Source: Tubulanus polymorphus
Lineage: Eukaryota > Animalia > Nemertea
Assembly (NCBI RefSeq): GCF_964204645.1
Contig: NC_134033.1
Coordinates: forward strand, 640,131-704,130
Direction of reading: 5' to 3'
DNA length: 64,000 bases
Below the pieces are notes generated by a model. It did no database searches, had not been told where the DNA came from, and saw only the letters and a list, made by a program, of their open reading frames with translations. Below, one piece after another: positions 6,889 through 62,347 of this stretch (within the stretch, counting starts at the first letter, position 1; each line of letters starts with the position of its first letter). A program made the position numbers and the translations under genes.

Positions 6889-6931
6889 CTATTTATCATC
6901 CGTGTAAGTATCTGCAGGTTCTGGTTCTGGT

Positions 6932-6969
<38 letters not shown>

Positions 6970-15860: not shown

Positions 15861-16351
15861 CTAAAGAGCAGGAGTAGCAGCCTCCTTTTGGTAAGCCTCA
15901 TCATCAGCTGGTCCATATTGGTCTGTAACGAAGATCGTATCACCGTTTGCCAGATCAATGACATCAGAATTTCCCTTACGATAACGATCAACGATTTTCT
16001 CGCCTTCTAAATCAGCTTCTAAAGTGCCTGGTTTTGGTCGTCCGTAACTTAGTCTTCTGCGGGGTGGAGACGGATTAGTTTGTATAAACCACCAGCCCAG
16101 AATCCATAATCCCCGTAGTACCTTCCTCCATAACCTTCGTGACTTCTTACTCCTAAACCTCCACTTCCTCCATATCCTCCCATATCATATCCTTCTCCAT
16201 GACCTCCATAATGCATAGCTTGAACTAAGGAATATCAAATGAATTCTTTCATCGCCTAGTTTTAACAGTGTTATCGTTGATGAAATGATTTCTGTGTAGA
16301 CCTACCGAAGGCGACACTGGTCAAAGCAATCACTACCAATAATGTATTCAT
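15861..16351 (-). pseudogene. Family paralogue A, frameshifted
   Basis: Signal exon 16306-16351 (MNTLLVVIALTSVAF) and exon 3 from 16224. A 1-nt loss in the Arg/Pro linker gives TAA at 16049-16051 before the conserved module, which survives in another frame. The TATA box is also altered (ctatctaaac). Confidence 0.75.
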
Positions 16352-18042
16352 AACTTCTTTTGTCGTCAGTTTGTCTTCCTACAACTACAACAAACAAGAG
16401 CAAATAGTTAAACACTATTATGAAAGAAAACATAAATACAACTGAATTTTGTAAACAATGCAAAGAAAAATGTTGAACTTACTTTCAATTAGGATATTTC
16501 AATCTATCCCTGGTTCTACCCTAAGCTTTCAAACTTAGCTGTATGAACTGTTTGCCATATCGTCCAGAGGAGTTTAGATAGTTATCGTATCATTCTTAAA
16601 TCTTACATAACGTGTCAGTTTTCGTCGGCAACCTGTCAACTCTTAATTTAGTTCGATGGTTGTTTATTCCGAGGAGTGCGACGGAAAAACCTTAATGAAT
16701 ATTTTCACAGGATATATTTGAACCAGTTGTTCACGTGGTACAGATGTTAAATCTAGTTGAATCAAAAATTTTAAAACCTTTTTTTTATCGGATAGAGCTA
16801 AGAATATAGAGCACATAGCCAGTAAACTAGGGTATTTTTTAACATGTCTTCAGAACCACTTGTCCTCTATTGAGATTCCTCAGAATGAAACAAAATAATA
16901 TAGGCATAAATGGACATTTGTTGTATCCACAGAAAGCATATCGACGTTCCTTCGATTGAAACTGTACGTTATTTTTCAAACCGGGCTCGTATAGGCCTAT
17001 AGGGAGAGGTTCTGGGTGTTCAAATGACACTCTTCCAGCTCAGCCACCAAGATGCCGGCCTTAAAGAAATTCTTGCATCGATCTTCAAGGGATTCGCTCA
17101 TTGGTGAAACATTTGTGTTAGTTGTCGTTCAAAATGTCTTTGAAACTGACTTCATTCCAAGCCATTGCGCCGTAAAATGATAATTCAGTAATTTAATTTA
17201 GTAATTTAATTCTTTAATGACCGATAAACGGTAAGTGAATGGGTAATGATATCAATATAATGGAATGCGCCGTTGAAAATTGTATCACAGTGAAATCCCA
17301 GGGGAGAACTCGATCCCAGGACCTCCGATCTACACACCCTTCGGCGTTTGCGCCTGATATAAAGTCCACTTTCGTAAATCAAACCACCACAATGACGGAC
17401 CTGCATCTTTCAATGTTGTTCTGAGCTACTTCTAAATCCCCACGAATTGACGCGAATTGAAACGGTAATTTCCCAAATGTACAGAAAAAAATCCTCGTCA
17501 TTTTTGGCCGCTATATTCAGTATTCGGAATACCAACATAAAAATAGCATATGAAGCCTTCATATCCAAATATGTTTCGCTTTCCATCTTTTTATAGTCAT
17601 CGTGTATGTATTAGATTAGTCAGTTTCTGTCGGCCACTTTTCAACCATTATTTCATAGTTCAATGGTTTCAGAGTTCAATCGAAATGCTAGTTCATGTGT
17701 AACGCGAGTCCTATTCTGTTGAGGTCTCTGTGCAAATTTTTATTAGAAAGAAGAAATGAAAAAATTGGAAATTACTTTGTTTTTTGTATTGTTTTCTTTT
17801 TTAATCCCTAAGATGTCCTTGTTATGGTAAATTGGCTTCTTAGGCGTCACTTTGAACTTCTATTGTCACGTTCTATTATTCACATATAATAAGAAAACTA
17901 AAACAAGATATTCCATGTAAAACGTAAAATGAAATAAACCGTGTAAGCTTTTATTGATCATTAAAATGATCGAGCAACTTTTATTCTACATGAAGGAGGA
18001 AACACGATTCATACAAGAATTACTCATTACCTATTATGAACC

Positions 18043-18511
18043 TTATTTTCCACCACCGAATCCAACATAAGCCGCATCATCAGCTGGTCCATATTGGTCG
18101 GTAACGATGGTCATCGTTTGCCAGATCAATGACATCGGAATTTCCCTTACGATAACGATCAACGATTTTCTCGCCTTCCAAATCAGCTTCTAAAGTGCCC
18201 GGTTTTGGTTTTGGTCGTCCGTAATTTGGTCGTCTGCGTGGAAGGCGACGAACTCCAAGGTATCTTCCTATATAACCTCCGTGACCTCTTCCTCTATATC
18301 CTCTACCTCCAACATAACGTCCACTATAACCTCCCAAATTATATCCTCCTGCATGAATTCCTGGTCCATTTTCATAATTCTGTGCTTGAACTTAAATATA
18401 AGAATATTTCAATGAAATTCCATGAACTTGTTTTAACAATGATTATGATTTCTGTGAAGACTTACCGAAGGCGACACCGGCCAACACAACCACTACCAAT
18501 ATTATATTCAT
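18043..18511 (-). pseudogene. Family paralogue B, frameshift near the C-terminus
   Basis: Signal exon 18466-18511 and exon 3 from 18390. A small deletion after DLAN shifts the frame (DDHRYRPIWTS*, stop at 18080). The ancestral tail DDAAYVGFGGGK* remains out of frame to 18043. Confidence 0.7.
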
Positions 18512-19337
18512 AGCTTCTTTAATCGTCAGTTTGTCTATAAAAACAGCAGGAGCAAATGGCATTATAGAACTTTTCGCGGTAGAAAACCTTTATAAAACCG
18601 AACATTATAAAACAATGAAAAGAATCGATGTTGAACTCACCTTCAAATGGGATATTTCAATCTATCCCTGGTTCTACCCTAAGCTTTCACACTTAGCTGT
18701 ATGAACTGTTTGTCACACTGTCCAGGGCGGTTTATAAAGTCAACGTATGGATCTTAAATCTTACATAACGAGTCAGTTTTCGTCGGCAACTTGTCAACTC
18801 TTAATTTAGTTCGATGGTTTTTTATTCCGAGGACTGCGAAGGGAATTCCGAAGTCTCTATAGATTTCTCGATAAAACCGACAAAAACAGGCGTCACATAT
18901 AAACCATCAGTTGTTCACGTGTTACAGGGATGTCTTATCCAGTTGAATTTAAAAAGGGTTTTGTGGATAGAATTTGAGATTCATACAGCCAGTAAACAAA
19001 CAGAATTTCTAACATGTTTTCAGAATCACATAACTACTTTCGCAATTACTAAATTTGTATGTTCATGTTTCATATCGTATTCGTTTACTATATTTTTTTA
19101 AGATTGCAAAATAAAATACAAAAATAAGACCAAAATATAGGTTTGTATTAAATGGACATAAGATGTGTCCACAGAAAGCATATCGACGTTCCTTCGATTG
19201 AAACTGTTATTTTTTCTCATGTATCAGGCTGTTATTTAGGGGGTAGATTCTCGGATTCAAACGACCTTTCCTCTGTCCATCGAGGAAGGTCCATCTAGAT
19301 CCCGCCGGCCTTAAGAAACTCCTTGCATCGATTTTTA

Positions 19338-19571
19338 AAGAAGGACGAAGAACCAGTTGTCGACGAGGCTTTCGAGGAGAACGAATAGGTCGGAAACCCA
19401 AAACCGCACGACGAAGTCATCGAAGACGCCATTGCCGAGAACGAGGAAACGAAATCGTTCGAAAAGCCATTGATCGCCGAAGCTTTGGAAATCAACGAAG
19501 ACAAAAAGTACCCGAAACATCCACATGAGGTCGCTGAAGAGGTCGTCGACTATAACGAGAAAGGACATTAA
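19338..19571 (+). pseudogene. Duplicated, 5'-truncated copy of the last exon of the 13232-15296 gene
   Basis: Near-identical to 15063-15296 but lacks the splice acceptor and has TCG>TAG (gaa tag gtc). Confidence 0.85.
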
Positions 19572-20262
19572 ACAAATGGCAAGAATCATATCATTTATAA
19601 AACATGCATTCATGTTACACAAATTTCTTTTATGGCATCAGATTTTGCAAGTTGCTGTTCAATTAATGTTCAACTCCAATTCAAAAGTCTACAAGGACAT
19701 TAAACAAATGGCAAGAATCATATTATCTATAAATCATCCAAAATTATGGTAGCCTGCACAAATTTACCTTTGGCATCTGGCATCAACTTTTACTTTTCAA
19801 TCTTCAACTACAAATTCAAACGTTGACCTACAGTTTCAGGACTTACATTTTCCAAAAGATCTTATATCTTCTAATTAAAGCATTACTTCACACTTTACTC
19901 GGATATTTACATTAGAAATGTTCGACGTGTAAATAAAATGTTTGTTGATTCTATTTCCAGTGCTGCAACGGTTGCTTCCAAAGACGCAAAAAATCGGACA
20001 ACGTCCTAAACGACGATTTGTACTCGAAGAAGTCTCTTGTAAATTGTTATTAGAAATAGAAATGAAAAAATCGGAAAATAGTTTCAGTTTTCGTTTATAT
20101 TGTTTTCTTGTAAACATAACAGTGGTATGTTAACTTCTGTTGTTGTGATGCTTTGTTTTCAACAAAGTTCAAAACAGTAAAATGAAAACATTCCATGAAA
20201 GCTTTCATTGATCATCAAAATGATCGAGCAACTTTATTTCACACGAAAGAAGGACACACAAT

Positions 20263-20790
20263 TCAAGCACTAATAATCCCATTACCACCGTCCATATCTA
20301 CTGGGGGTACATAAGCCGTATCATCAGCTGGTCCATATTGGTCTGTAACGATGATCGTATCACCGTTTGCCAGATCGATGACATCAGAATTTCCCTTACG
20401 ATAACGATCAACGATTTTCTCGCCTTCCAAATCAGCTTCTAAAGTGCCCGGTTTTGGTCGTCCGTAATTTGGTCGTCTGCGTGGACGACGACGAACTGGT
20501 CTGTATCCACCACCAGCACTTACTCCATAACCTCCATGGTATCTTCCTATATAACCTCCGTGACCTCTTCCTCTATATCCTCCACCTCCAACATAACGTC
20601 CACTATAACCTCCCAAATTATATCCTCCTGCATGAATTCCTGGTCCATTTTCATAATTATGTGCTTGACCTTAAATATAAGAATATTTCAAAGAAATTCC
20701 ATGAACTTGTTTTAACAATGATTATGATTTCTGTGGAGACTTACCGAAGGCGACACCGGCCAACGCAACCACTACCAATATTATATTCAT
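20263..20790 (-). CDS. Family paralogue C, secreted Gly/Tyr/Arg-rich protein (~150 aa)
   Basis: Exons 20745-20790 (MNIILVVVALAGVAF) and 20263-20669. Open frame through the conserved module. Confidence 0.85.
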
Positions 20791-20915
20791 AGCTTCTTTA
20801 ATCGTCAGTTTGTCTATAAAAACCGAAGAGGCAAATCATATGATAAAACCTTTCGCGGTAGAAAACCTTTATAAAACTGAACATTATAAAACAATGAAAA
20901 GAATCGATGTTGAAC

Positions 20916-21020
20916 TCACCTTCAAATGGGATATTTCAATCTATCCCTGGTTTTACCCTAAGCTTTCAAACTTAGCTGTATGAACTGTTTGGCACATTGT
21001 CCAGAGAGGTTTATATAGTA
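20916..21020 (-). promoter_or_regulatory. Representative family TATA box plus non-coding exon 1, repeated before all 12 paralogues
   Basis: Minus strand ctatataaacctctctggacaatgtgccaaacagttcatacagctaagtttgaaagcttagggt...gatagattgaaatatccc...g|gtgag. Equivalents at ~16480, 18637, 22248, 23616, 24957, 26288, 27351, 28817, 31873, 34418 and 38710. Confidence 0.8.
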
Positions 21021-21654
21021 AATATACACATCTTAAATCTTACATAACGTGTCAGTTTTCGTCGGCAACTTGTCAACTCTTAATTTAGTTCGATGGTTTT
21101 TTATTCCGAGGACTGCGAAGAGAATTCCGAAGTCTCTATAGATTTCTCTGTTAGCTTTAACTTGTCTTAAAAATTTGATAAATTGCCGAGAAACGTGAGT
21201 CTGACGTGACACATCTTCTGAATACATTCAAGATTTGTTCGGGCACTACGAATGTATATAAAATCGTTATCTTTATTCCAAAGAGAAGAAAAGATACGAA
21301 ACCGTCCTAGCAACGACACAAACACTGTAAAATAGTTATCAGAAAATAGAAATAAGAAGATTGGCAATGAGTTATAGCCTCCTTTTCTTTATATCGTGTA
21401 CGTAGACGTAGATCATTTCCCGACTATAACCAGTTCTACGTTTGTGTCACGAAGAACTTTTGTTTTCACGTTTTGAATAAATAATGCAATATCCTTTTGA
21501 CACACTAGAATAGATAATAGAAAGTTGGCACAAACGAATCATAATCAGTGATTATTACTTGATTTATTCTATTTCACACGAAAGGAAGACACAAGATTTA
21601 TATTATGCAATTTGAGATTTCCATTTGCTACATTTTTTTTTCTTTCTATCAATT

Positions 21655-22122
21655 TTATTTCCGCCCAAAGCCGTAAGCCGCGTCATCAGCTGGTCCATAT
21701 TGGTCAGTAACGATGATCGTATCACCGTTTGCCAGATCGATGACATCAGAATTTCCCTTACGATAACGATCAACGATTTTCTCGCCTTCCAAATCAGCTT
21801 CTAAAGTGCCCGGTTTTGGTTTTGGTCGTCCGTAATTTGGTCGTCTGCGTGGAAGGCGACGAACTCCATGGTATCTTCCTATATAACCTCCGTGACCTGT
21901 TCCTCTATATCCTCTACCTCCAACATAACGTCCACTATAACCTCCCAAATTATATCCTCCTGCATGAATTCCTGGTCCAGTTTCATAATTCTGTGCTTGA
22001 ACTTAAATATAAGAATATTTCAATGAAATTCCATGAACTAGTTTTAACAATGATTATGATTTCTGTGGAGACTTACCGAAGGCGACACCGGCCAACGCAA
22101 CCACTACCAATATTATATTCAT
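21655..22122 (-). CDS. Family paralogue D (~130 aa, ends AYGFGRK)
   Basis: Exons 22077-22122 and 21655-22001. Confidence 0.85.
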
Positions 22123-22986
22123 AGCTTCTTTAATCGTCAGTTTGTCTATAAAAACAGCAGGAGCAAATCATATGATAAAACCTTTCGCAGTAGAAAACCT
22201 TTATAAAACTGAACATTATAAAACAATGAAAAGAATCGATGTTGAACTCACCTTCAAATGGGATATTTCAATCTATCCCTGGTTTTACCCTAAGCTTTCA
22301 AACTTAGCTGTATGAACTGTTTGGCACATTGTCCAGAGAGGTTTATATAGTAAATATACACATCTTAAATCTTACATAACGAGTCAGTTTTCGTCGGCAA
22401 CTTGTCAACTCTTAATTTAGTTCGATGGTTTTTTATTCCGAGGACTGCGAAGAGAATTCCGAAGTCTCTATAGATTTCTCTGTTAGCTTTAACTTGTCTT
22501 AAAAATTTGATAAATTGCCGAGAAACGTGAGTCTGACGTGACACATCTTCTGAATACATTCAAGATTTGCTCGGGCACTACGAATGTATATAAAATCGTT
22601 ATCTTTATTCCAAAGAGAAGAAAAGATGCGAAACCGTCCTAGCAACGACACAAACACTGTAAAATAGTTATCAGAAAATAGAAATAAGAAGATTGGCAAT
22701 GAGTTATAGCCTCCTTTTCTTTATATCGTGTACGTAGACGTAGATCATTTCCCGACTATAACCAGTTCTACGTTTGTGTCACGAAGAACTTTTGTTTTCA
22801 CGTTTTGAATAAATAATGCAATATCCTTTTGACACACTAGAATAGATAATAGAAAGTTGGCACAAACGAATCATAATCAGTGATTATTACTTGATTTATT
22901 CTATTTCACACGAAAGGAAGACACAAGATTTATATTATGCAATTTGAGATTTCCATTTGCTACATTTTTTTTTCTTTCCATCAATT

Positions 22987-23490
22987 TTATTTCCGCCCAA
23001 AGCCGTAAGCCGCGTCATCAGCTGGTCCATATTGATCAGTAACGATGATCGTATCACCGTTTGCCAGATCGATGACATCAGAATTTCCCTTACGATAACG
23101 ATCAACGATTTTCTCGCCTACCAAATCAGCTTCTAAAGTGCCCGGTTTTGGTTTTGGTCGTCCGTAATTTGGTCGTCTGCGTGGAAGGCGACGAACTGGT
23201 CTGTATCCACCACCAGCACTTACTCCATAACCTCCATGGTATCTTCCTCTATAAACTCCGTGACCTGTTCCTCTATATCCTCCACCTCCAACATAACGTC
23301 CACTATAACCTCCCAAATTATATCCTCCTGCATGAATTCCTGGTCCATTTTCATAATTATGTGCTTGACCTTAAATATAAGAATATTTCAAAGAAATTCC
23401 ATGAACTTGTTTTAACAATGATTATGATTTCTGTGGAGACTTACCGAAGGCGACACCGGCCAACGCAACCACTACCAATATTATATTCAT
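22987..23490 (-). CDS. Family paralogue E (~142 aa, ends AYGFGRK)
   Basis: Exons 23445-23490 and 22987-23369. Confidence 0.85.
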
Positions 23491-24354
23491 AGCTTCTTTA
23501 ATCGTCAGTTTGTCTATAAAAACAGCAGGAGCAAATCATATGATAAAACCTTTCGCAGTAGAAAACCTTTATAAAACTGAACATTATAAAACAATGAAAA
23601 GAATCGATGTTGAACTCACCTTCAAATGGGATATTTCAATCTATCCCTGGTTTTACCCTAAGCTTTCAAACTTAGCTGTATGAACTGTTTGGCACATTGT
23701 CCAGAGAGGTTTATATAGTAAATATACACATCTTAAATCTTACATAACGAGTCAGTTTTCGTCGGCAACTTGTCAACTCTTAATTTAGTTCGATGGTTTT
23801 TTATTCCGAGGACTGCGAAGAGAATTCCGAAGTCTCTATAGATTTCTCTGTTAGCTTTAACTTGTCTTAAAAATTTGATAAATTGCCGAGAAACGTGAGT
23901 CTGACGTGACACATCTTCTGAATACATTCAAGATTTGCTCGGGCACTACGAATGTATATAAAATCGTTATCTTTATTCCAAAGAGAAGAAAAGATGCGAA
24001 ACCGTCCTAGCAACGACACAAACACTGTAAAATAGTTATCAGAAAATAGAAATAAGAAGATTGGCAATGAATTATAGCCTCCTTTTCTTTATATCGTGTA
24101 CGTAGACGTAGATCATTTCCCGACTATAACCAGTTCTACGTTTGTGTCACGAAGAACTTTTGTTTTCACGTTTTGAATAAATAATGCAATATCCTTTTGA
24201 CACACCAGAATAGATAATAGAAAGTTGGCACAAACGAATCATAATCAGTGATTATTACTTGATTTATTCTATTTCACACGAAAGGAAGACACAAGATTTA
24301 TATTATGCAATTTGAGATTTCCATTTGCTACATTTTTTTTTCTTTCCATCAATT

Positions 24355-24831
24355 TTATTTCCGCCCAAAGCCGTAAGCCGCGTCATCAGCTGGTCCATAT
24401 TGATCAGTAACGATGATCGTATCACCGTTTGCCAGATCGATGACATCAGAATTTCCCTTACGATAACGATCAACGATTTTCTCGCCTTCCAAATCAGCTT
24501 CTAAAGTGCCCGGTTTTGGTTTTGGTCGTCCGTAATTTGGTCGTCTGCGTGGATGACGACGAACTCCATAACCTCCATGGTATCTTCCTATATAACCTCC
24601 GTGACCTCTTCCTCTATATCCTCCACCTCCAACATAACGTCCACTATAACCTCCCAAATTATATCCTCCTGCATGAATTCCTGGTCCAGTTTCATAATTC
24701 TGTGCTTGAACTTAAATATAAGAATATTTCAATGAAATTCCATGAACTTGTTTTAACAGTGATTATGATTTCTGTGGAGACTTACCGAAGGCGACACTGG
24801 CCAACGCAACCACTACCAATATTATATTCAT
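24355..24831 (-). CDS. Family paralogue F (~133 aa, ends AYGFGRK)
   Basis: Exons 24786-24831 and 24355-24710. Confidence 0.85.
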
Positions 24832-25695
24832 AGCTTCTTTAATCGTCAGTTTGTCTATAAAAACCAAAGGAGCAAATCATATGATAAAACCTTTCGCGGT
24901 AGAAAACCTTTATAAAACTGAACATTATAAAACAATGAAAAGAATCGATGTTGAACTCACCTTCAGTTGGGATATTTCAATCTATCCCTGGTTTTACCCT
25001 AAGCTTTCAAACTTAGCTGTATGAACTGTTTGGCACATTGTCCAGAGAGGTTTATATAGTAAATATACACATCTTAAATCTTACATAACGAGTCAGTTTT
25101 CGTCGGCAACTTGTCAACTCTTAATTTAGTTCGATGGTTTTTTATTCCGAGGACTGCGAAGAGAATTCCGAAGTCTCTATAGATTTCTCTGTTAGCTTTA
25201 ACTTGTCTTAAAAATTTGATAAATTGCCGAGAAACGTGAGTCTGACGTGACACATCTTCTGAATACATTCAAGATTTGTTCGGGCACTACGAATGTATAT
25301 AAAATCGTTATCTTTATTCCAAAGAGAAGAAAAGATACGAAACCGTCCTAGCAACGACACAAACACTGTAAAATAGTTATCAGAAAATAGAAATAAGAAG
25401 ATTGGCAATGAGTTATAGCCTCCTTTTCTTTATATCGTGTACGTAGACGTAGATCATTTCCCGACTATAACCAGTTCTACGTTTGTGTCACGAAGAACTT
25501 TTGTTTTCACGTTTTGAATAAATAATGCAATATCCTTTTGACACACTAGAATAGATAATAGAAAGTTGGCACAAACGAATCATAATCAGTGATTATTACT
25601 TGATTTATTCTATTTCACACGAAAGGAAGACACAAGATTTATATTATGCAATTTGAGATTTCCATTTGCTACATTTTTTTTTCTTTCTATCAATT

Positions 25696-26163
25696 TTATT
25701 TCCGCCCAAAGCCGTAAGCCGCGTCATCAGCTGGTCCATATTGGTCAGTAACGATGATCGTATCACCGTTTGCCAGATCGATGACATCAGAATTTCCCTT
25801 ACGATAACGATCAACGATTTTCTCGCCTTCCAAATCAGCTTCTAAAGTGCCCGGTTTTGGTTTTGGTCGTCCGTAATTTGGTCGTCTGCGTGGAAGGCGA
25901 CGAACTCCATGGTATCTTCCTATATAACCTCCGTGACCTGTTCCTCTATATCCTCTACCTCCAACATAACGTCCACTATAACCTCCCAAATTATATCCTC
26001 CTGCATGAATTCCTGGTCCAGTTTCATAATTCTGTGCTTGAACTTAAATATAAGAATATTTCAATGAAATTCCATGAACTTGTTTTAACAGTGATTATGA
26101 TTTCTGTGGAGACTTACCGAAGGCGACACCGGCCAACACAACCACTACCAATATTATATTCAT
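25696..26163 (-). CDS. Family paralogue G (~130 aa, mature region same as D)
   Basis: Exons 26118-26163 and 25696-26042. Confidence 0.85.
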
Positions 26164-26767
26164 AGCTTCTTTAATCGTCAGTTTGTCTATAAAAACGGAA
26201 GGAGCAAATTATATGATAAAACCTTTCGCGGTAGAAAACCTTTATAAAACTGAACATTATAAAACAATGAAAAGAATCGATGTTGAACTCACCTTCAAAT
26301 GGGATATTTCAATCTATCCCTGGTTCTACCCTAAGCTTTCACACTTAGCTGCATGAACTGTTTGGCACACTGTCCAGGGAGGTTTATAAAGTCAACGTAT
26401 GGATCTTAAATCTTACGTAACGAGTCAGTTTTCGTCGACAACTTGTCAACTCTTAATTTAGTTCGATGGTTGTTTATTCCGAGGACCGCGAAGAGAATTC
26501 CGAAGTCTCTATAGATTTCTCGATAAAACCGACAAAACATGCATCTCATTAATGGAACATCACCTTTTAAACATTGCAATAGAATGATAGAAAAGTATAA
26601 TAAAAAGATCCATGTAAAAAGTGAACTAGATAAACTTTGATTGATCGTGAAAATGATCGAGTAACTTTATTCCACGTGAAAGGAGGACACAAATCAGATA
26701 GTCCCATTCTACCACCCACAGGTACTGAAGGTACATATCAGTTTTGTTTTTCTTTTCATTATGAATA

Positions 26768-27226
26768 TCATTTTCCCCTTCCATAAACCGCGGAATCGGC
26801 TCGACCATATTGGTCGGTAACGAAGATCGTATCACCGTTTGCCAGATCGATGACATCAGAATTTCCCTTACGATAACGATCAACGATTTTCTCGCCTTCC
26901 AAATCAGCTTCTAAAGTGCCCGGTTTTGGTCGTCCGTAATTTGGTCGTCTGCGTGGAAGGCGACGAACTCCAAGGTATCTTCCTATATAACCTCCGTGAC
27001 CTCTTCCTCTATATCCTCCACCTCCAACATAACGTCCACTATAACCTCCCAAATTATATCCTCCTGCATGAATTCCTGGTCCAGTTTCATACTGCTGTGC
27101 CTGAACTTAAATATAAGAATATTTCAAAGAAATTCCATGAACTTGTTTTAACAGTGATTATGATTTCTGCTGATGCTTACCCAAGGCGACACTGGCCAAC
27201 GCAACCACTACCAATATTATATTCAT
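26768..27226 (-). CDS. Family paralogue H (~127 aa, ends VYGRGK)
   Basis: Exons 27181-27226 and 26768-27105. Confidence 0.85.
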
Positions 27227-28158
27227 AGCTTCTTTAATCGTCAGTTTGTCTATAAAAACCGAAGGAGCAAATTATATGATAAAACCTTTCGCGGTAGAAA
27301 ACCTTTATAAAACTGAACATTATAAAACAATGAAAAGAATCGATGTTGAACTTACCTTTAGTTGGGATATTTCAATCTATCCCTGGTTCTACCCTAAGCT
27401 TTCAAACTTAGCTGTATGAACTGTTTGGTACATTGTCCAGAGAGGTTTATATAGTAAATATACACATCTTAAATCTTACATAACGAGTCAGTTTTCGTCG
27501 GCAACTTGTCGACTCTTAATTTAGTTCGATGGTTGTTTATTCCGAGGACTGCGAAGAGAATTCCGAAGTCTCTATAGATTTCTCGATAAAACCGACAAAA
27601 ACAGGCTTCTCATATGAAACACCACTTTTCAACACAGGAATTATATTTGAAACAGTTGTTCACGTGGTACAGATGTCTCAGTCAGTTGAATTGAAAACTA
27701 AAAACCTTTTTTCGGATATTTTTTCAGATTCTGGAACATGTAGGAAGTAAAACACAAGTTAGCTTTAACTTGTCTTCAAAATTTGATAAATTGCCGAGAA
27801 ACGTGAGTCTGACGTGACACATCTTCAGAATACATGCAAGACTTGTTCGGGCACTACGAAAATCAGAAAATAGAAATAAGAAGATTGGCAATGAATTATA
27901 GCCTCCTTTTCTTTATATCGTGTACGTAGACGTAGACCATTTCCCGACTATAACCAGTTCTCCGTTTGTGCCACGAAGAACTTCTGTTTTGACGTTTTGA
28001 AAAAATAATGCAATATCCTTTTGACATACCAGAATAGATAATAGAAAGTTGGCACAAACGAATCATAATCAGGGATTATTACTTGATTTATTTCATTTCA
28101 CACGAAAGGAAGACACAAGATTTATTGAAGATTCAAGTTTTTCTTTTCTTTATTAACT

Positions 28159-28694
28159 TTATTTTCCACCACCGAATCCAACATAAGCCGTATCATCAGC
28201 TGGTCCATATTGGTCTGTAACGATGATCGTATCACCGTTTGCCAGATCGATGACATCAGAATTTCCCTTACGATAACGATCAACGATTTTCTCGCCTTCT
28301 AAATCAGCTTCTAAAGTGCCCGGTTTTGGTCGTCCGTAACTTGGTCGTCTGCGTGGACGTCGACGAACTGGTCTGTATCCACCACCAGCACTTACTCCAT
28401 AACCTCCATGGTATATTCCTCTATAAACTCCGTGACCTCTTCCTCTGTATCCTCTACCTCCAACATAACGTCCACTATAACCTCCCAAATGATATTCTCC
28501 TGCATTTATCCCTGGTCCGTTTCCATACTCCTGAGCTTAAAATCGAAACAAAACAGGTAAGAAACACGAAAGCCAAACTGCATGTATATCACGTCATCAT
28601 TAGTGATGATGCTGTTATGTGAAGATTGTGATTTCTGTGTAGACCTACCGAAGGCGACACTGGCCAAAGCAACCACTACCAATATTATATTCAT
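28159..28694 (-). CDS. Family paralogue I (~140 aa, ends YVGFGGGK)
   Basis: Exons 28649-28694 and 28159-28535 (AQEYGNGPG...). Confidence 0.85.
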
Positions 28695-30553
28695 AGCTTC
28701 TTTAATCGTCAGTTTGTCTATAAAAACCGAAATGAGTAAATTATGATACGAACTTTCATGGTAGAAAACATTTATAAAACTGAACTTCGTAAAACGATGA
28801 AAAGAATCAATGTTGAACTCACCTTTAATTGGGATATTTCAATCTATCCCAGGTTCTACCCTAAGCTTTCAAACTTAGCTGCAAAAAATGTTTGTCACAT
28901 TGTCCAGGGAAGTTTATATAGTCAATGTATGGATCTTAAATCTAACGTAACTTGTCAGTTTTAGTTGGTAAATTGTCAACTCTTTATTTAGTACGATGGT
29001 TGTTTATTGCGAGCACTGCGATGGGACTCCTGAAGTCTCTATAGATTCATCCATAAAACTGACAAAAACATGCCTCTCATATGTAACATCAGTTTTTAAA
29101 CATACTTACAGGATATTTTGAACAGCTGTTTGCGTTGTAAGTGTGACTGATTCAGTTGAATTAGAAAATAGAAAATCTTATTTTGGAAAGAATTGAGAGG
29201 GCGTGTAGTAGTAAATAGAAGTCAGACATCTAAGATTGCTTTATATGAAGAATAAAACATGTTTTAAAGGTGTGTAAAACATGGAATTCCGCTGTGTCCA
29301 CATAAAACCATGTCGACGTTCCTTTGACTGATACTGCTATCTCTCATGAAACGTTAAGAATCACAATATCCGTGACAAAGACTCGATGAGTAACAAATCC
29401 CACAATGTGTGAACGAATCTAACAAAGAAATAATTTCTTCCTCTTCTATTTTTTGCCAGTCATTTTAGACTAAAGAAGGGTGGTAGCAACCACTCGAAAT
29501 ATTTCTAATTTTTCAATAAACTTTTTAGATTCGTTTTCACAAATTTTTTTTCTCATGCTATCTTTTCATTCTTCGATGTAGTTCTGTGAACTGCTTCAAA
29601 TACTTCAGATGGAACTTTGAATCGATTAAATCTAGTCACTATGATTCAGATCACCAAGATATGAATGACAAGCGTGTAAATATGCCAAAAATCCACTTCG
29701 TTTCTTGGGCAATTTTTTTAGAACATCACCATTAGAAACAGCATGTAGAATATGTTTCGCCTTCTTTAATCGATGTATTTCCTTTGCTCTGTGGATCTTA
29801 CAAAGACATTAAATAACTATTCAACTGATTAAATCCATGTAACCGAGCAAAACGTCAATCAATTTTATTTCATAACACGAAAAACGGACACAAAAATTTC
29901 ATCATCCATTATCAGATTCTTTATTCGTCAGTCACGATATTCAACATCAGTTACATTAGATTTACTTTTACTTCTGGAATGACGGATTCAAGACTGCAAC
30001 AGATGATAGAGAGAGAATCGTGTTAGTCATTTTGTAATATTCGTCTTGAGTATAGTGAAGGCTGGTCAGAAACATGACATTTCTAAAGATAAAGTTGGGC
30101 TCTAGGTTAAACTATGCAATGGTCGCCATTAAAACTACCTACGACACAGTTACATAGCGGGGCGAGGTTGGACAATAGAAGTCACAAAGGGGCATTTTGA
30201 TGTCCGAAAAAGCGTACTCCCGGACTGAGGGACTAGTTTTGAAGAACTTGTCGAGTCTCAAAAGGACTGATGTCCAAAAAGGCCATGTTAAGCGTACTCC
30301 CGCTTTGAAAGGAACAAACTTCTTTTTTGACAATATGAAAAGGGGCACTCACTGGATCCACCCCTGTGTTTTATCAACAAAAACATCATCAACATGATAT
30401 CCTTGGAAATAAAGTTAGGCCTTAGGTAGATCTATGCAATGATCTCTATCTAAACTAACTATGATACAGTTACATACCATCAATTTATCCACGATGATAA
30501 TACAATTTAGATATATATATAATGATTAATTTACCGTTTATCGAAAATCCAGT

Positions 30554-31746
30554 TTATCCTGTCTCCTGGTCGACATATATCACACCGTCACCGTCATCTT
30601 CCTTATCGTCATCTTCATCAACATCATCATCGTCATCATCACCATCAGATCGCCCCATACCATAATACCCATCCTCTTCATAATAACCGTCCTCTTCATA
30701 ATATACCTCATCGACCTCGTATGTCTCCTGGTCGACGTAAGTCTCCTGGTCGACGTATGCCTCTTCGTCGACGTATGTCTCCTGGTCGACATATGTCTCC
30801 TGGTCGACATAAGCTGGACCATACGCATCTTCTACGACGATTGTATCACCGTTTGCCAGATCGATGACATCAGAATTTCCCTTACGATAACGTTTAATGA
30901 TTTTCTGGCCTTCCAAATCAGCTTCTAAAGTGCCTGGTTTTGGTTTTGGTCGTCCGTAACTTGGTCGTCTGCGTGGACGACGACGAATTGGTCTGTAGCC
31001 ACCACCTCCTCCAACATGGCCACCTCCACCGCCACCTCCATAACCTCCTCCTCCAACATGGCCACCTCCACCGCCGCCTCCATAACCTCCTCCTCCAACA
31101 TGGCCACCTCCACCGCCGCCTCCATAACCTCCTCCTCCTACATGACCACCTCCTCCATGGCCTCCTCCTCCATAACCTCCACCTCCGACATGACCTCCAC
31201 CATGTCCTCCACCACCACCTCCTCCGTAACCTCCACCATGACCTCTGTGCCCTCCGTGGCTTCCATGACCTCCTGCTATTCCAACGTATCCCCCACCTGG
31301 AGCTGGTCGATCATGACCTCCTCCACCACCGCCATAGCCTCCTACATGTCCTCCATGACCATGACCTCCTGAAGGACCTGGGCCATAACCACCTGGTCCT
31401 GACGGGCCTGGGCCATAATCTCCTGGTCCTGGGCCGTATCCACCTGGTCCCGCTGGGCCTGGGCCATGATCTCCTGGTCCTGCTGGGCCTGGACCATAAT
31501 CTCCTGGTCCTGCTGGGCCTGGTCCATAATCTCCTGGTCCTGCTGGACCTGGCCCATAACCACCCGGTCCTGGCCGATGATCAGCTGGTCCTGGCCCATG
31601 ATCAGCTGGTCCATACTGAGCTGAAAGTTGGAGATAGAAATGTATAAGATGCGGTAAATCAAGTAAATCAGTGTAATTAATGATTTCTGCAGAGACTTAC
31701 CGAAGGCGACACTGGCCAACGCAACCACTACCAATATTACATTCAT
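30554..31746 (-). CDS. Family paralogue J, long form (~370 aa): GPGPAGPGDY repeats, Gly/His block, conserved module, YVDQET repeats, acidic tail
   Basis: Exons 31701-31746 and 30554-31620. Manual translation from 31620 to 31081 is stop-free and in frame with the 30554 stop. The ORF track shows only the part after an internal TTG. Confidence 0.88.
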
Positions 31747-32848
31747 AGCTTTTTGGCGTCTTTACAACCTCCTGAACAAAAAACAGACAATAGTAAACAT
31801 TCAGTAGTTACAAAGCAATAGCTTTACTTTTAATGTGGCTTTGTGAAGTAAATGCAAAGAAATTCGTTTAGCTCACCTCGAATTGGGATATTTCAATCTA
31901 TCCCTGGTTCTACCCTAAGTTTTCAAACTTAGCTGCATAAACTGTTTAGCGTATCGTCCAGACTGGTTTATATAGGCGTCCCTTACGTCAGACTCCAGCT
32001 TTCATTTTATGCAAAAGCAATATTTCTGTCGGCTATTTGTCAACTTTGATGGCATTCAGTTTGGTTCAATTGCTACATTTCGTCGAGGACCGCGAAGGGA
32101 ACTCCAAATTCTATACGAATTGCTCAATAAAATCGTTAATAAAATGCGTCTCGTGTCGAGCGTCGTTTCTTACAAATGTTCTATGGACATTTAAAACACT
32201 TGTTGGTTCGTGTTCTAGTGGTACAGGTGTTATATACTGACGAATTAAAAACTGATATAATGGAATCTTTTTAAAGGAATGCATTAAGAGTTTTTTTCGT
32301 ATCGTTACGTAAGTTTTAGCACAATAAATTACCAATTAGTATTACAATCAGTCGGAATGCTATAGAATATTCTAGCCTTTTGCAGAAATACCATCTATCA
32401 ATTGATTGATTCATATTCTATATAATACCAACTGAGACTCCTCCCAAAGACATTACGTACGAATCTGCATCATTGAGATTGAAAGGGCGTCCATCTTCTA
32501 GAATTTCGAGCAAAACATTAAGCAAACGTAAAACTAAACTTTCCATGTAACTGAGCACATCATTATTCAACTTTATTTCAAACAAAATATTCGTGAATTT
32601 CAGATCTATGTCACCAGTTACATTTGGATTTCCCTTTATCTCTCGGCTGTTTTGAGGATGACGGCTGCGGAACTGGAATAAAAAAGAACAAAGAAAAGAA
32701 AGCTGTTAATCATTTCTTTCATCTAAGCTCATCTAGGTAAAGGACAAGAACATATCACATCAGAAAAAAAAAGATTTCGGCAATAGCGCAATGATCTTGT
32801 GAATTCAATGGACTCGAATCAGTGAAATAATCATCTTACCGTCTAAAC

Positions 32849-34280
32849 CTACTCATCGGCATCGGCATCGGCATCTGCATCATCGGCATCTGCAGCATCG
32901 TCAGTAGCGGCATCATCATCGGCATCATCTGCATCAGCATCATCAGCATCATCTTCCACATCAGCGGATCGACCTATACCCGATGTAGTACCGTAAGTTA
33001 CTTCCTCGTAAACCTCTGCTTCGTAGCTTCCTTCATCGTCATAGTCTCCAACATCGGCACGACCCTGAGCTTCACCGTAACTTTCTGCCTCGTAAATCGC
33101 CTCGGCGTAACTCGCTTCCTCGTAACTTTTTTCGTCCACGTAGTCTCCAACATCGGCACGGCCCTGAGCCGCTGCTGCCGCTGCTGCCGCCGCCGCAGCT
33201 GCCTGCTCTTCCTCGTATTCTGCCTTTTCGTAATCTTCTTCGGTATCGTACTCTTCAACATCGGCACGTCCAGCGACCTCTTCAGGGACCTCATAATTAT
33301 CATTGTCATCATCATCACCCTCTCCATAGGCGTCCTTTATGACAACCTTTCCACCGTCATCCAGATCCAGTATTTCATCATCTCCCTTACGGTCCTTTTT
33401 AACTACTTTCTTGCCTTTCAATCCTCTTTTTAATTGAGCTTTACTTGGTCTTGGATGTCCGTGAATTGGTGGTCTGTGAAGAATTGGTCCGTATCCAAAG
33501 CCTCCTCCTCCACCACCGCCTCCATAACCTCCTCCTACGAAATGACCTACACCATGTCCTCCTCCATAACCTTCTCCACCACCTCCTCCATAACCTCCTC
33601 CGCCTCCTCCTCCATAACCTCCTCCACCACCGCCTGCGAAATGACCTACACCATGTCCTCCTCCATAACCTTCTCCACCACCTCCTCCATAACCTCCTCC
33701 GCCTCCTCCTCCATAACCTCCTCCGCCGCCTCCTCCATAACCTCCTCCGTGACTCATATGACCTCCTCCATAACCTTCTCCGCCACCTCCTCCATAACCT
33801 CCTCCATAACCTCCTCCATGATCAAAATGACCTCCTCCATAACCTTCTCCGCCACCTCCTCCATAACCTCCTCCATGATCAAAATGACCTCCACCATGGC
33901 CCATATGGGCATCTGGTCCGTAACCTCCAGCTCCGTGATGGTCCATATGGTCCATATGCCCACCTGGTCCATATCCGCCATCTCCTAAGTGGCCCATGTG
34001 GTCATCTGGTCCGTAACCATGGTCCATATAGCCTCCTGGACCATCTCCTAAATGGCCTCCAGGTCCGTCCATATATCCTCCGCCATGGTCTGGACCTGGG
34101 CCATAAGGACCGTAGTCCATATCAGGACCACCATAACCTTGTGCTGAAAATCAAATAACGAAACGTAAGAAGTTCGTTAACGAAAAACATGTCATGTTAT
34201 TTTGATGATGATTATGATTTCTGCTGATGCTTACCCAAGGCGACACTGGCCAACGCAATTGCTACCAATATTATATTCAT
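32849..34280 (-). CDS. Family paralogue K, divergent long form (~446 aa): His/Met/Gly block, GGGGY repeats, divergent Lys-rich module, poly-Ala, GRADV repeats, (DA)n tail
   Basis: Exons 34235-34280 (MNIILVAIALASVAL) and 32849-34143. Module variant LKGKKVVKKDRKGDDEILDLDDGGKVVIKDAYG. Confidence 0.88.
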
Positions 34281-37051
34281 AGCTTCTTTTGTCGTCAGTT
34301 TGTCTATAAAACAAAAGCAAATAATATTTAAAACCTTTCATGGGTGAATACGTTCATACAACTAATAATTCATGCTGAACATTGTAAAACAATGGGGGGG
34401 GGGGGAATAATGAAGAACTCACCTTCAATTGGGATATTTCAATCTATCCCTGGTTCTACCCTAAGCTTTCAAACTTAGCTGCATAAACTGTTTGGCACAC
34501 TGTCCAGGGCGGTTTATATAGTAATCACTTGCGACAGACCTGCATCTTTTTTAATTCAAGAAGTCATTTTTCTGTCGGGCGTTTGACAACTTTGATGGGA
34601 ATAAATAAGATTTTGATGGTTATTTTTTTCGAGGGCTGCCAAGGAATTTCAAAGTCTGTCTCGATGTTTTGATGAAAGCGAATTGTATACTTTCCCCTTA
34701 ACGTGTGCCTCATTACGAGCATCCTATTTTTTTCTTATTTTCCCTTTGTCGGTACATATAACACACTTGCGGCTGTGTTTGTTCAAAGTACCATGCTGGC
34801 GACCAGGTGTTTTATACTGTTTAGACATTTAAAAAAACAAACATGTATCTACCACTTTCTTGCAATTGTGAAATTATTATTTGAAAGGTACCATGAACTT
34901 ATCATCCAATCATCTTTAGCAACTCGTGGCTTTTGTTGTTTTAATGGTCACATTTGAATAAATCTCTATCTAAAATACATGTTGTTTATAACGCCACATT
35001 TGGTTGTAATGGAAACGTATAAGGATTGTTGCATACGACGATGAGTTTTCGATAGTGTGCGCAAAATGGCAGGACTTCGTGAAGTGCATCAGAACGTTTC
35101 CAAATGTGTACACGAAAATAACGAAGACACTGAACTGACCAGGTACATGATGCTTAATGTATCTGAACAATGAAATAGTTTTGGACCGCCGTCATTTACA
35201 AACGGTTTCATCCTAAAATGCAGTTCTTCAGTTTATCCACAACTTTTTTTATATACGTCATGTAGTTTTGTTTCAAGGAAAATTTTACAATTAGTTATTT
35301 TGCTAAGGTCAAAGTTGACATTAATAGCAAAGTTCCACCACTCCCGGCAACCGCCAAGTAAAAGCTTAGTCCTAGATTACGTAATGCTTTTATCTTCCGA
35401 TTTCCCACCAAATTCCGCAATCCACCTCACAATTTTCTGAACAAATCTCATAATAATAGTTCATTTTCATTCCATTGTCCGCCGTCAAATATATTTAAAA
35501 TATGTAGTTACGAAGAACAAATTTACTTATTAGTCTGGGAGCAATCCAATCGAGTGGGAAATGATTGTTAGAGCAAGACACCTTCAAGTATTAGAAAAAT
35601 CTTTGACCCAAATTTTCGACTGTTGTCCTGTTGCTATAACGACGGTTTTCTCGGCAACAATTGGTAACTCTGATACTCAGCCTATGAAATCGGTCCCAGG
35701 ACTACCAGGTACTTACTCTAATCAGAGTATAATTGATGATAATAAAACAGACATGTCACAGAAGGCAAACAAATACAACGGCTCACGTGAACAGCTTAAT
35801 AATAGAGGAAATATGTTTCGAGGTAATGTCTGACGTTTTGAGTTAATGTCTGGTGTATTGAAGGAAAATGAAAATTTCTAATTCACTCATCCGTGACCCA
35901 TGATTATCCGCCTTAATTGCGGAGGTCCTGATATTGCGGCACATAAACCACGGGAGTTGACAGTTTTGTATGACAGGACATTAAAGCTCAGATAAAAAGT
36001 GCGTGTATTCATGACACGTGTTGTTGTTCGGAATGTTACTGGTTACAGCTGGTTTATATTGCTGTCGAACACGTCACGCATTAGTCACGTCCCAGTCACG
36101 TGTTATGGCTGTAGATAAAAACCGATGAACAGTGAGTATGTTCGGAGAAACTTTGTCAAGTGGTCAGCGGTTAAGGTTTTTGTTCGTAAGCGATATGCCA
36201 TTTATTTTAACATTGTTTTTCCTCTATGGCTCAATGTCAGATTGAGTTGCTGAAATGGTGTTGGGCATCATATTGCGCTAGAGACGAGGAAGACATCAAT
36301 GAGTAGAACGTTACAGCTTCGTGTTACAGCTAACCTCATTATACGGCAAAATCTCGTTGAAGGTGATATTTGGGCGTTTAGGTATCATGCTAAAATACAT
36401 TTCATCTGAAGAATACGTTTGATTATAATCGGCGTGTCGTAGTAATAGATGTTGGGTTACATGTAGAAGCGGCTGGTGAACTAGGGACGCGCGGATCTGT
36501 AGACACGATGCAACTTCTGCACCATCGACCTAGTACACGCTGGTCTTATTCTGTAAACCCCAATTTCAGCTCATTGCAACTTTTGTAGATTCCTCCGCAC
36601 AACACTTTCCATCGCGCCACAAACATAGTAAGCCGCGCAATTAATGGGTTTCTGGTGGTACATTTTTATGCAGGAATACAACGATTTTCTCCCTTTACTC
36701 AAGTGTGACAAGAAGACCTAAACAAAACGTATGACGTCACCGAGCAACTAATGCGTTTACTTTTATTTCATAAAAAAGAATGAGGACACAGATTCGATAT
36801 CGACATCCGGCATTAGTTACGTTGCCTCTTTCAATTTCGTCTTTGAAATTTCCTTTGGTGAGGTAGTAGTTGAAATGATGTACCGCGAAGCTACAAAAAA
36901 ATAAGAACAGAATACAATATAATTTATTCGAGAAACTAGAATCTGATTATAGAACTAGAAGGATAGCCTTTAACAATGCAAATATGAGTAATATCATTAG
37001 TAAATGGAAATTGGAAAAATGACTTTCGGTATATATAAAAGATGGATGGGT

Positions 37052-37171
37052 TGGTTGCTCAAAAGTTAGCAGAAGTTAACTTTGCTAACTTCACCAATTC
37101 ATCCACTACATACCAGTAGACATATTACTAATTAAAATGAGGTAAACTTGAAACTGACTTTTCAGCAACTG
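37052..37171. mobile_element. MITE-like element (gttgctcaaaagtt TIR family) in the 3'-UTR intron of paralogue L
   Basis: ggttgctcaaaagttag ... ctgacttttcagcaactg. Related to 42530-42643. Confidence 0.5.
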
Positions 37172-37269
37172 CAACCGCGGGTCTTTCCATGTCTTGCGAT
37201 TAAAGAAATGAGAATTTTGATTTTTATTCGTGCGTCAAATTATGGATAACAAGTATAACACCTTACCAT

Positions 37270-38517
37270 TTATTCATACTCATCATCGTCATCTTCCTCA
37301 TCGTCGTATGAATCTTCCTCGACGACTGTAACTGTTTCTCCGTCATCGGAACGTCCGCCATAATAGCTTTCCTCCATTCCGTAAGACTCTTCATCGTCGT
37401 AATAGGTCTCCTCGTCGACATAGTCCTCGTAATCTTCGTAATCCTCATAATCTTCTCGATCTTCGTAATCCTCATAATCCTCATAATCTTCATGATCTTC
37501 GTAATCTTCATGATCTTCGTAATCTTCATAATCTTCGTAATCCTCATAATCTTCATGATCTTCGTAATCCTCATAATCCTCATAATCTTCGTAATCCTCG
37601 TCATAACTATCAGCTGGACCATACGCATCTTCTACAATGATCGTGTCACCGTTTGCCAGATCGATGACATCAGAATTTCCCTTACGATAACGATCAACGA
37701 TTTTCTCGCCTTCTAAATCAGCTTCTAAAGTGCCTGGTTTTGGTTTTGGTCGTCCGTAACTTGGTCGTCTGCGTGGACGACGACGAATTGGTCTGTAGCC
37801 ACCACCTCCTCCAACATTGCCTCCTCCACCACCTCCTCCAGCATGGCCTCCTCCATAACCTCCACCTCCTACATGACCACCTCCATGTCCTCCATGACCT
37901 CTTGGTACACCAACATATCCTCCAACTGGACCGGGGCCTTGGGGACCTGGGCCATAAGGTCCAGGACCTGCTGGGCCTGGGCCATAACCTCCTGGACCAC
38001 CTGGTCCAACTGGACCTGGGCCATAATCACCTGGTCCAACTGGACCTGGGCCATAATCACCTGGTCCTACGGGACCTGGTCCATAATCACCTGGTCCTGG
38101 GCCGTATCCTCCTGGACCACTTGGCCCTGCTGGGCCTGGGCCATAACCACCTGGACCACCTGGTCCTACTGGGCCTGGTCCATAATCACCTGGTCCTGGA
38201 CCAATAGGACCTGGTCCATAAGGTCCAGGTCCACTTGGACCTGGACCATAATCACCTGGGCCAGGGCCAATGGGACCTGGACCGTATCCTCCTGGACCAC
38301 CGATAGGTCCATGGCCACCGGGACCTGGACCATATTCAGCGGGGCCTGGGCCCATGGCCATAGGACCTGGTCCTGGTCCATACTGAGCTGAAAGTTAGAG
38401 AAAGATATGTTGATTAAGATGCGTTGAACCAAGATTAATCAGTGTCCTTAATGATTTCTGCAGAGACTTACCGAAGGCGACACCGGCCAACGCAACTACG
38501 ACCAATAATATATTCAT
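37270..38517 (-). CDS. Family paralogue L, long form (~387 aa): silk-like GPGxY repeats, conserved module, (EDY)n acidic tail
   Basis: Exons 38472-38517 (MNILLVVVALAGVAF) and 37270-38387. Confidence 0.88.
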
Positions 38518-39554
38518 AACTTCTTTTGTCGTCTCAAGGACCTGAAGAAAATAAACATTCATTATAGATCAAACAACTCGGGCACAGTTAGTCAGCTGAA
38601 TACCTGGTATAACAATGAAGTTAAATTATCAGCCGGTTTTCTTCAACCAACTTCTGAGTAACTGCAGCTACAGACTCTTTGTTTAAAAAAAAATCAATGA
38701 AAATAATGACTCACCTTTAGATGGGATATTTCAATCTATCCCTGGTGCTCTACCCTAAGTTTTCAAACCTAGCTGTGTGAACTGTTTGTCACATTGTCCA
38801 GAGAGGTTTATATAGTCACTAGTAACATCGTACATCTTTCATTTACGTAGGCAATCATTAGTTTATTTGACCACTTGTCATTTTTAATGGCTTCCAGTTC
38901 ACTCGGAGGGTCATCCATTTTTTTTCGAGGCTAACGAAGGAATTCTGATTTTCTTTTCGGAAATATCAATTTCGATCGGTGGAAATCGATTCTGCGCGCG
39001 TCCCAATGTGAGCATCGTATTTTTATATCCTATCGCTACATTTAGAACACTTGTCGATACCGATTCATGGGACGCAGGTGTCCGCGAGTGTCGCCATAAA
39101 AATAACCTGCACGTCCGGAAATTCCTTGAATTATCGCAATGTTTAGAAAACCATTGAGAGTAAACAGTTCGTTGAAGGTTGATGCAATCAATTCATAAAA
39201 CTGCGCCCACTCATGGGGTGGTGACGCGGGCTTCGTTGAAATCAAGGACACATTTATCAATTACATTCATGCTTTATGTTTCGGGTGATTTGACTTAACT
39301 CTTTCATAGGCCTACACATTTGGTGGGTATTTTAGGTGAAATTGGAAACAGAGAAATCACGATTAACTTACTGTTAGTATCTAAAAGGGTAACACAGGGC
39401 TCATATTGTAAAAGATAATCTTTTGATTTGCAGTTAAACATCATGCTTAAGTCGTGCACGAATGTGACAGTCGTTTCTCTACGAATTTTTCACTTGCAGA
39501 CAAGAAAAGTCTTGCTGCCTATTCTGCATCAATTCAATATCAAGGAAATCAACA

Positions 39555-62024: not shown

Positions 62025-62313
62025 CTCCACCTCTCTCCTAACCTCATCTCTCTCCTCATATCTCTCCTCATCTCTCTCCTCATCTCTCTCCCAGTCTCCT
62101 CTCTAACCGCTGATCCTAAAACCATTCTCACTCCTCCCTCTCCTCTTGCTTGTTCCTCTCCATCTCACCACTCTCTCCTCATCTATCTCCTCATCTCTCT
62201 CCTCATCTCTCTCATCTCTCTCCTCATCTCTCTCCTCATCTCTCTCCTCATCTCTCTCCTCATCTCTCTCTATCTCCTCATCTCTCTCCTCATCTCTCTC
62301 CTCATCTCTCTCC

Positions 62314-62347
<34 letters not shown>

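Follow-up and report, generated by a model that had tools for sequence, protein, structure and literature searches.

The 64,000-nucleotide window analysed here, from the palaeonemertean ribbon worm Tubulanus polymorphus (Nemertea), contains a tandem array of twelve paralogous genes (lettered A to L) whose products share a short, non-repetitive module set between low-complexity arms. The module is a new, lineage-restricted family, yet of a familiar kind, in which secreted repeat proteins that evolve fast carry an ordered orphan module, and its present status as an orphan domain in an orphan family is well supported. Our analysis supports purifying selection on the module, which is predicted with moderate confidence to fold as a short helix followed by a three-stranded antiparallel β-meander. 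We favour, at about an even chance, the explanation that the family consists of lineage-restricted, secreted, cysteine-free, mostly disordered structural or adhesive low-complexity proteins, in which a polybasic linker and the module act together as an ordered sticker.

Copies of the module and extent of the conserved block

A six-frame regular-expression and motif scan, together with tblastn searches that used the modules of L and K as queries, located twelve copies of the module. All lie on the minus strand, from 15,912 to 37,758 (Table 1; module coordinates run from YG to YG and comprise 45–47 codons). The almost invariant consensus string described in the first-pass annotation is correct. 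The same annotation had assigned the module to all twelve paralogues; twelve copies do exist, but only 10 are intact, A and B being damaged by frameshifts. Because of the single-nucleotide deletion in the linker of A, its signal peptide and Gly/Tyr region are in a different frame from the module. In the alignment of the 11 in-frame copies, 16 columns are invariant (P8, G15, P19, L24, L28, G30, K32, R38, K39, G40, D46, L47, G50, D57, Y59 and G60 in the numbering of L), and no indel occurs between L24 and G60 in any of them. This includes the divergent paralogue K (33,323–33,463), which had correctly been said to keep the pattern.

At the DNA level, the similarity between L and D is confined to three patches: the promoter and exon 1 (87% nucleotide identity), the signal-peptide exon (90%), and the linker together with the module (37,787–37,609; 91%). 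Since the coding similarity covers both linker and module, the conserved block is about 60 amino acids long. The length of about 40 amino acids given earlier applies to the foldable part (39–40 amino acids) and leaves out the polybasic linker, an element that lies upstream of the module in every copy and is conserved along with it. The flanks had also been described as changing completely, which holds between the small (A–I) and the large (J, K and L) genes, but not among D–G, where the units are 95–98% identical across the whole 1.3 kb. These four are thus very recent duplicates and are uninformative on selection. The comparison of A with D is older and, unlike D–G, informative: nucleotide identity is 96% in the module, 79% in both the promoter and intron 2, 72% in the Gly/Tyr region and 61% in the 3′ flank.

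Predicted fold

Structures were predicted with AlphaFold2 from the alignment of 11 sequences, whose effective depth is about 1.5 sequences, once with L and once with K as the first sequence; because the two runs share this one shallow alignment, they are not independent. With L first, the mean predicted local distance difference test (pLDDT) score was 68.6, with core blocks at 76–82, and a helix (23–26) and three strands (33–39, 42–47 and 52–56) were predicted. With K first, the helix spanned 19–25 and the strands 31–37, 40–45 and 50–54, with a core pLDDT of about 77. The small β-meander suggested in the first-pass annotation is therefore recovered with moderate confidence whether L or K leads the alignment. 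For this short, moderate-confidence model, structural comparisons returned only generic three-stranded meanders, with Foldseek against the PDB (best E 0.24), with VIA-align against 48,161 chains (Z ≤ 2.4) and in an ESM Atlas shape search (template modelling score ≤ 0.51, mixed families). As read from the predicted strands, both faces of the sheet carry aliphatic residues, which three strands alone could not bury, so that packing against a partner would be expected.

Short islands of the form x-I/V-I/V-V-E/D-E/D occur in the otherwise acidic, hydrophobic-poor sequence, with 4 strict matches compared with 0.13 expected in shuffled sequences (Table 1). Two of these matches correspond to strand 3 in the modules of J and L, the remaining two fall within other cluster genes, and looser versions are present in the tails of L and J. 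That such islands might serve as single-strand partners for the edge of the module sheet is pure speculation.

Selection on the module

Pairwise ratios of non-synonymous to synonymous substitution rates (dN/dS, ω; Nei-Gojobori) were 0.07–0.15 for the small copies compared with A, 0.13–0.20 for the small copies compared with L, and 0.35–0.56 in comparisons with J. Under a Goldman-Yang codon model, ω was 0.19 without K (2ΔlnL = 17.3 against ω = 1) and 0.32 with K (2ΔlnL = 13.75), and ω = 1 was rejected in both cases. These values support purifying selection. Values of ω well below 1 also rule out an RNA- or DNA-level element as the cause of the conservation, and an Rfam scan of the window gave no match. 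Together with the predicted fold and the lack of a strong match to a known domain (see below), this selection leaves the module proposed in that annotation standing.

Several observations weigh against the explanation favoured here. K gives an ω of 0.65–1.03 with any other copy (Nei-Gojobori), and when neutral substitution was simulated from L at the observed 55/141 nucleotide differences, the K/L amino acid identity (18/47) did not exceed the neutral expectation of 16.4 (P = 0.31). The module of the frameshifted A has a dS of 0.07–0.18, about half the intron divergence; as A is frameshifted and still has a near-perfect module with low dS, gene conversion may contribute. Moreover, the AlphaFold2 confidence is only moderate (mean pLDDT 61–69), and an antimicrobial-peptide reading would account equally well for the composition of the small paralogues.

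The values for K and A, together with the identity of the D–G units throughout their length and a module in A that is 96–98% identical amid flanks of 72–79%, would also suit a module that is not selected at all, its near-invariance reflecting recent duplication and gene conversion in the sole alignable non-repetitive stretch. We consider this quite improbable, given that ω = 1 is rejected with and without K and that synonymous changes exceed non-synonymous changes 5–7 fold per site between the small copies and L, an excess that gene conversion does not explain. Furthermore, L and K give one predicted fold, and the replacements in K, whose module core is free of indels, are far more conservative than in the neutral simulation (K/L BLOSUM62 score of 117 versus 60 ± 16; P = 2e-4). 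This excess indicates that K keeps the physicochemical pattern of the module while its charges have turned over. Recent duplication nevertheless accounts for much of the conservation among the nine small copies, with a possible further contribution from gene conversion.

Relatives and resemblance to bacterial repeats

At E ≤ 1, the 268-Mb genome contains 12 matches to the module, all of which are the array copies. A HMMER profile search of 1.84 billion representative proteins identified a sole true relative, the gene of copy G itself (E = 5e-35). One small paralogue is 100% identical to the T. polymorphus RefSeq entry XP_074658561.1 ('uncharacterized protein LOC141911439'), and XP_074658529.1 is the RefSeq model of the frameshifted copy B (18050–18531, minus strand), given as a protein of 135 amino acids with its start extended upstream and a truncated module. 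L, J and K were absent from both protein collections searched (by word index and by exhaustive profile search) and may therefore be unannotated. A word-index protein search gave no match with the L module region and its own gene alone with a small paralogue, a protein-language-model atlas search gave no usable match, and no description of such proteins was found in the literature consulted. Within the locus, the module profile produced only insignificant partial matches to the tails of J, K and L and to the neighbouring cluster genes.

The module had not been recognised as a named eukaryotic domain by the first-pass annotation, and this agrees with our searches of Pfam and NCBIfam, which yielded only sub-threshold matches to BapA-prefix profiles, and with the lack of relatives outside the array in the genome and library searches. 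The BapA-prefix matches were seen in all 11 copies, K included. The best match to BapA_N (Pfam PF22783) reached 18.1 bits (E 0.0018–0.0022), below the curated cut-off of 27, and that to NCBIfam NF033677 reached 15.5 bits (E 0.012), below the cut-off of 35. The BapA_N alignment covers positions 32–65 of the 123 in the profile, i.e., about 34 positions and not the whole domain. Below the self-match in the HMMER search stood six repeat proteins, with E-values that sum 4–22 weak repeats of at most 13 bits each. All six were rejected as artefacts of repetition. P0002 and P0006 match only the Pro-rich/LxG part, and P0003, P0004, P0005 and P0007 are bacterial repeat proteins with HCBP_related (PF06594), BapA_N and/or RTX repeats. 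The bacterial repeat motif does resemble the last two strands of the module, and 15 of 21 residues are alike between K and one P0004 repeat.

A true remote homology to the β-meander core of the bacterial BapA-prefix and HCBP_related families, whether ancient or transferred and with a similar packing or calcium-linked role, would account for this recurrent match and for the shared strand-turn-strand-turn-strand pattern (R-x-G-N/D-D-h-h-x-L-x-x-G-D/E-x-I-x-V-x-D-x-aromatic). In addition, hhalign aligned the module with the bacterial repeats at 94.6% probability over 24 columns, a value inflated by circularity, as it was the best library hits that supplied the partner alignment. We nonetheless judge such homology very improbable. 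The scores of 15–18 bits lie below the curated cut-offs, and HCBP_related (42 positions) gave no match at E ≤ 10, its second half (IE.I.FADGT) being absent from the module, which passes into the acidic tail after DAYG. The context differs as well: bacterial RTX-type adhesins are giant proteins with RTX or Ig-like repeats, in which the motif stands in tandem beside RTX nonapeptides, whereas each animal protein of the array carries the module just once, amid secreted low-complexity sequence. The exon that encodes it is an ordinary animal one, in a gene with introns, signal peptide and low-complexity arms, and has no bacterial-like neighbours. As judged from these sequence comparisons, the likeness is a motif-level resemblance and not membership.

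No PDB sequence was matched by the bacterial repeat profile, and hence the look-alike motif has no solved template. Searching the PDB with the module profile gave just non-significant rows for designed ankyrin repeat proteins (DARPins) and YD repeats. With the designed ankyrin N-cap the module shares a motif-level likeness (G-x-K-h-h...R-x-G...D-h...L-A-N-G-x-D-h-N-x-x-D-x-Y-G), but two gaps are needed and the module is a single unit. An ankyrin repeat was rejected on the basis of the DARPin E-values (at least 0.18), the lack of any Pfam Ank match, and the prediction of strands instead of helix-turn-helix.

Gene structure and protein architecture

The genes share a common plan: a TATA promoter is followed by a non-coding exon, then by a signal-peptide exon and by a single large exon, with GT-AG introns between the exons. 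The large exon encodes, in this order, a Gly/Tyr-rich region, the polybasic Arg/Pro linker, the module and a tail. The promoter/exon-1 core (84–95% nucleotide identity) and the signal-peptide exon (83–95%) are common to 12/12 genes and are conserved as well as the module.

Table 1. Coordinates of the module copies, gene parts and aliphatic islands in the window.
Feature	Position	Strand	Remarks
Module A	15912-16046	-	Module itself intact; 1-nt linker deletion just upstream
Module B	about 18075-18262	-	5-nt deletion after LAN, inside the module
Module C	20332-20466	-	
Module D	21694-21834	-	Exon 3 identical to G
Module E	23026-23166	-	Single E-to-V change
Module F	24394-24534	-	
Module G	25735-25875	-	Product is RefSeq XP_074658561.1 (LOC141911439, uncharacterized, 130 aa)
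Module H	26804-26938	-	
Module I	28204-28338	-	45 codons, one KP fewer
Module J	30818-30958	-	
Module K	33323-33463	-	Divergent paralogue; 38-42% aa identity to other copies
Module L	37618-37758	-	Reference copy; 47 codons, from the linker's YGRPKPKPG end to DAYG
Rest of L polybasic Arg/Pro linker	37759-37797	-	Whole linker net +10
Small genes C-I (seven intact)	20263-28536	-	Units of about 1.1-1.4 kb; mature products of about 110-135 aa
Gene J large exon	30554-31610	-	Start approximate, short upstream intron reads open; signal-exon ATG at 31745
Gene K large exon (open frame)	32849-34150	-	Gly/Tyr/His region, weakly basic linker, basic module, tail
Gene L large exon, phase 1	37270-38387	-	GPGxY repeats, Gly/His block, linker, module, tail
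Gene L signal-peptide exon	38472-38541	-	ATG at 38,517; GT donor after 38,472
Gene L promoter core and non-coding exon 1	38700-38850	-	TATA box 38,814-38,807
Aliphatic island	7027-7044	-	
Aliphatic island	14505-14522	+	
Aliphatic island	30827-30844	-	
Aliphatic island	37627-37644	-	

All family proteins lack Cys and Trp, and their Tyr and Gly contents range from 7 to 21% and from 38 to 57%, respectively. The Gly/Tyr arm is 40–55 amino acids long in C–I (Gly 38–42%, Tyr 15%, plus Arg and His) and about 200 amino acids long in J, K and L (Gly 48–57%), with GPGxY-type repeats in J and L. The linker carries a net charge of +7 to +10 (+2 in K) and the 39–40-amino-acid module one of −3 to −6 (+4 in K). 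The tails are 11–22 amino acids long in the small genes and 87–157 in J, K and L, where they are composed of Asp/Glu/Tyr or Ala/Asp/Glu and reach net charges of −36 to −65; the L tail, for instance, comprises 115 amino acids of Asp/Glu/Tyr type (net −65) and the K tail 157 of Ala/Asp/Glu type (net −56). The mature proteins accordingly form two charge classes, the small cationic C–I (+3 to +8) and the large polyanionic J, K and L (−33 to −68). The proteins thus show the signal peptide, extreme Gly/Tyr bias and block charge architecture of secreted structural or adhesive low-complexity proteins, a functional class and not a homology family.

K departs from the other copies in two respects. Its linker and module (33323–33510, minus strand) show a charge swap, the linker going from about +10 to +2 and the module, in which several Glu/Asp residues have become Lys, from −5 to +4; the sum of linker and module remains net positive despite the swap. 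Its module is also by far the most divergent (68% at the nucleotide level), despite a promoter/exon-1 core (34400–34530, minus strand) that is 92–95% identical to those of B–H, 91% to that of I and 86% to that of A. The core of L is less close to those of the small genes (87–89%, and 81% for A). Either the 5′ region of the array has been homogenised or it is more strongly constrained than the coding block.

Proposed role of the module and alternative explanations

If the proteins are structural or adhesive, they would build up a secreted material, for example a glue, a mucus fibre, a tube or an egg coat, and gland cells would make them at a high level. Tandem amplification with units that are 95–98% identical fits a product needed in bulk. 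The linker and module would constitute the single ordered sticker common to all members. By itself the meander is unlikely to be stable, and it probably associates with a second copy, either sheet-to-sheet or edge-to-edge; the polybasic linker probably binds the Asp/Glu/Tyr tails. Through both contacts together, cationic and anionic members would be able to co-condense. Repeat slippage would make the low-complexity arms evolve fast while selection holds the module. A putative role as an assembly or oligomerisation hub, which the first-pass annotation had put forward, is plausible.

Two known systems offer points of comparison. The terminal domains of spider silk proteins are small, ordered, conserved and non-repetitive, and are thought to control storage and assembly. 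As in the T. polymorphus array, a conserved ordered domain is combined with diverging, repetitive Gly-rich arms (GPGxY-type in J and L). The analogy would be functional only, since there is no relation in sequence or fold, and the module is internal, about 40 amino acids long and predicted to be of β type, not a terminal helical bundle. The cement of the sandcastle worm contains oppositely charged proteins, and mussel foot proteins are rich in Gly, Tyr and Arg. The array likewise combines Gly/Tyr-rich basic secreted proteins with strongly polyanionic partners, a composition that, by analogy, appears suited to complex coacervation and tyrosine-based curing. There is no homology with these adhesives, however; the anionic charge in the array comes from Asp, Glu and Tyr instead of phosphoserine, and a shared folded module has no parallel there.

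In the main rival explanation, the small paralogues would encode precursors of host-defence peptides, with an active cationic N-terminal part and the anionic module as a neutralising or chaperoning pro-piece. Defence-peptide precursors typically join a conserved signal and pro-region to a hypervariable mature peptide, and here the signal peptide and module are conserved and the Gly/Tyr part is variable. With a net charge of +3 to +8, the small products are cationic; their variable part contains 38–42% Gly and 15% Tyr, is rich in Arg and His, and precedes a module of −5. Several tails finish in G-(R/K)-K, a possible amidation signal, the array duplicates rapidly in tandem, and the RRxPRRRP...RPKPKP stretch recalls proline-rich antimicrobial peptides. 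The resemblance extends to the Gly-rich cationic part, the Pro/Arg-rich stretch and the tandem array of diptericin-type Gly-rich and Pro-rich antimicrobial peptides. Nevertheless, no Pfam antimicrobial family is matched, the module has no counterpart in those peptides, and the Pro that follows each Arg run disfavours cleavage by convertases. J, K and L are unlike antimicrobial peptides, given their GPGxY/Gly arms of 200 amino acids and their tails with net charges of −36 to −65. A defence function thus fits the small genes but not the large ones, and we regard it as unlikely.

A more specific possibility within the structural or adhesive explanation is that the locus encodes a self-contained two-component condensate in which the small cationic and large polyanionic paralogues would co-assemble through pairing of their modules and electrostatic contacts between linkers and tails, the product being the sticky proboscis glue or the matrix of pseudocnidae, the eversible secretory bodies of the nemertean proboscis. 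We consider this possibility unlikely. The structural compounds of pseudocnidae have been stated in a review to be uncharacterised (PMC7897414).

Neighbouring loci

Other open frames of similar bias lie near the array. At 6889–8577 on the minus strand, a large open frame encodes a Gly/Tyr/Glu-rich repeat protein with GYGYGEEEAYYDN units, a His-Gly block and an end of PE repeats. It has neither the module nor the promoter and signal exon of the array; a short G-x-G-R-S-D-D-G-E/D motif near the C-terminus is common to this frame and J, K and L. Two plus-strand frames adjoin the array (13232–13459 and 14283–14642), one with a clear signal peptide, an acidic His/Glu-rich body and the end KGDDDVVIVVEG, the other rich in Tyr, Asp and Pro. 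Both may be further secreted low-complexity members of the cluster. Elsewhere in the window, an intron-less open frame (50537–51676, plus strand) encodes a rhodopsin-family seven-transmembrane receptor (Pfam 7tm_1, E 3.8e-11). A long frame of (E/I)(E)RDEE repeats with a GC skew of −0.5 (62270–62959, minus strand) is open on both strands and is thus probably a simple repeat and not a gene.

Implications

If the module is a true self-associating mini-domain, it would represent a new, minimal and ordered sticker through which disordered block-polyampholyte proteins become organised, which would be of interest to the fields of bio-adhesives and condensates. It would also provide a first molecular handle on the secretions of nemerteans, whose structural proteins are essentially unknown.

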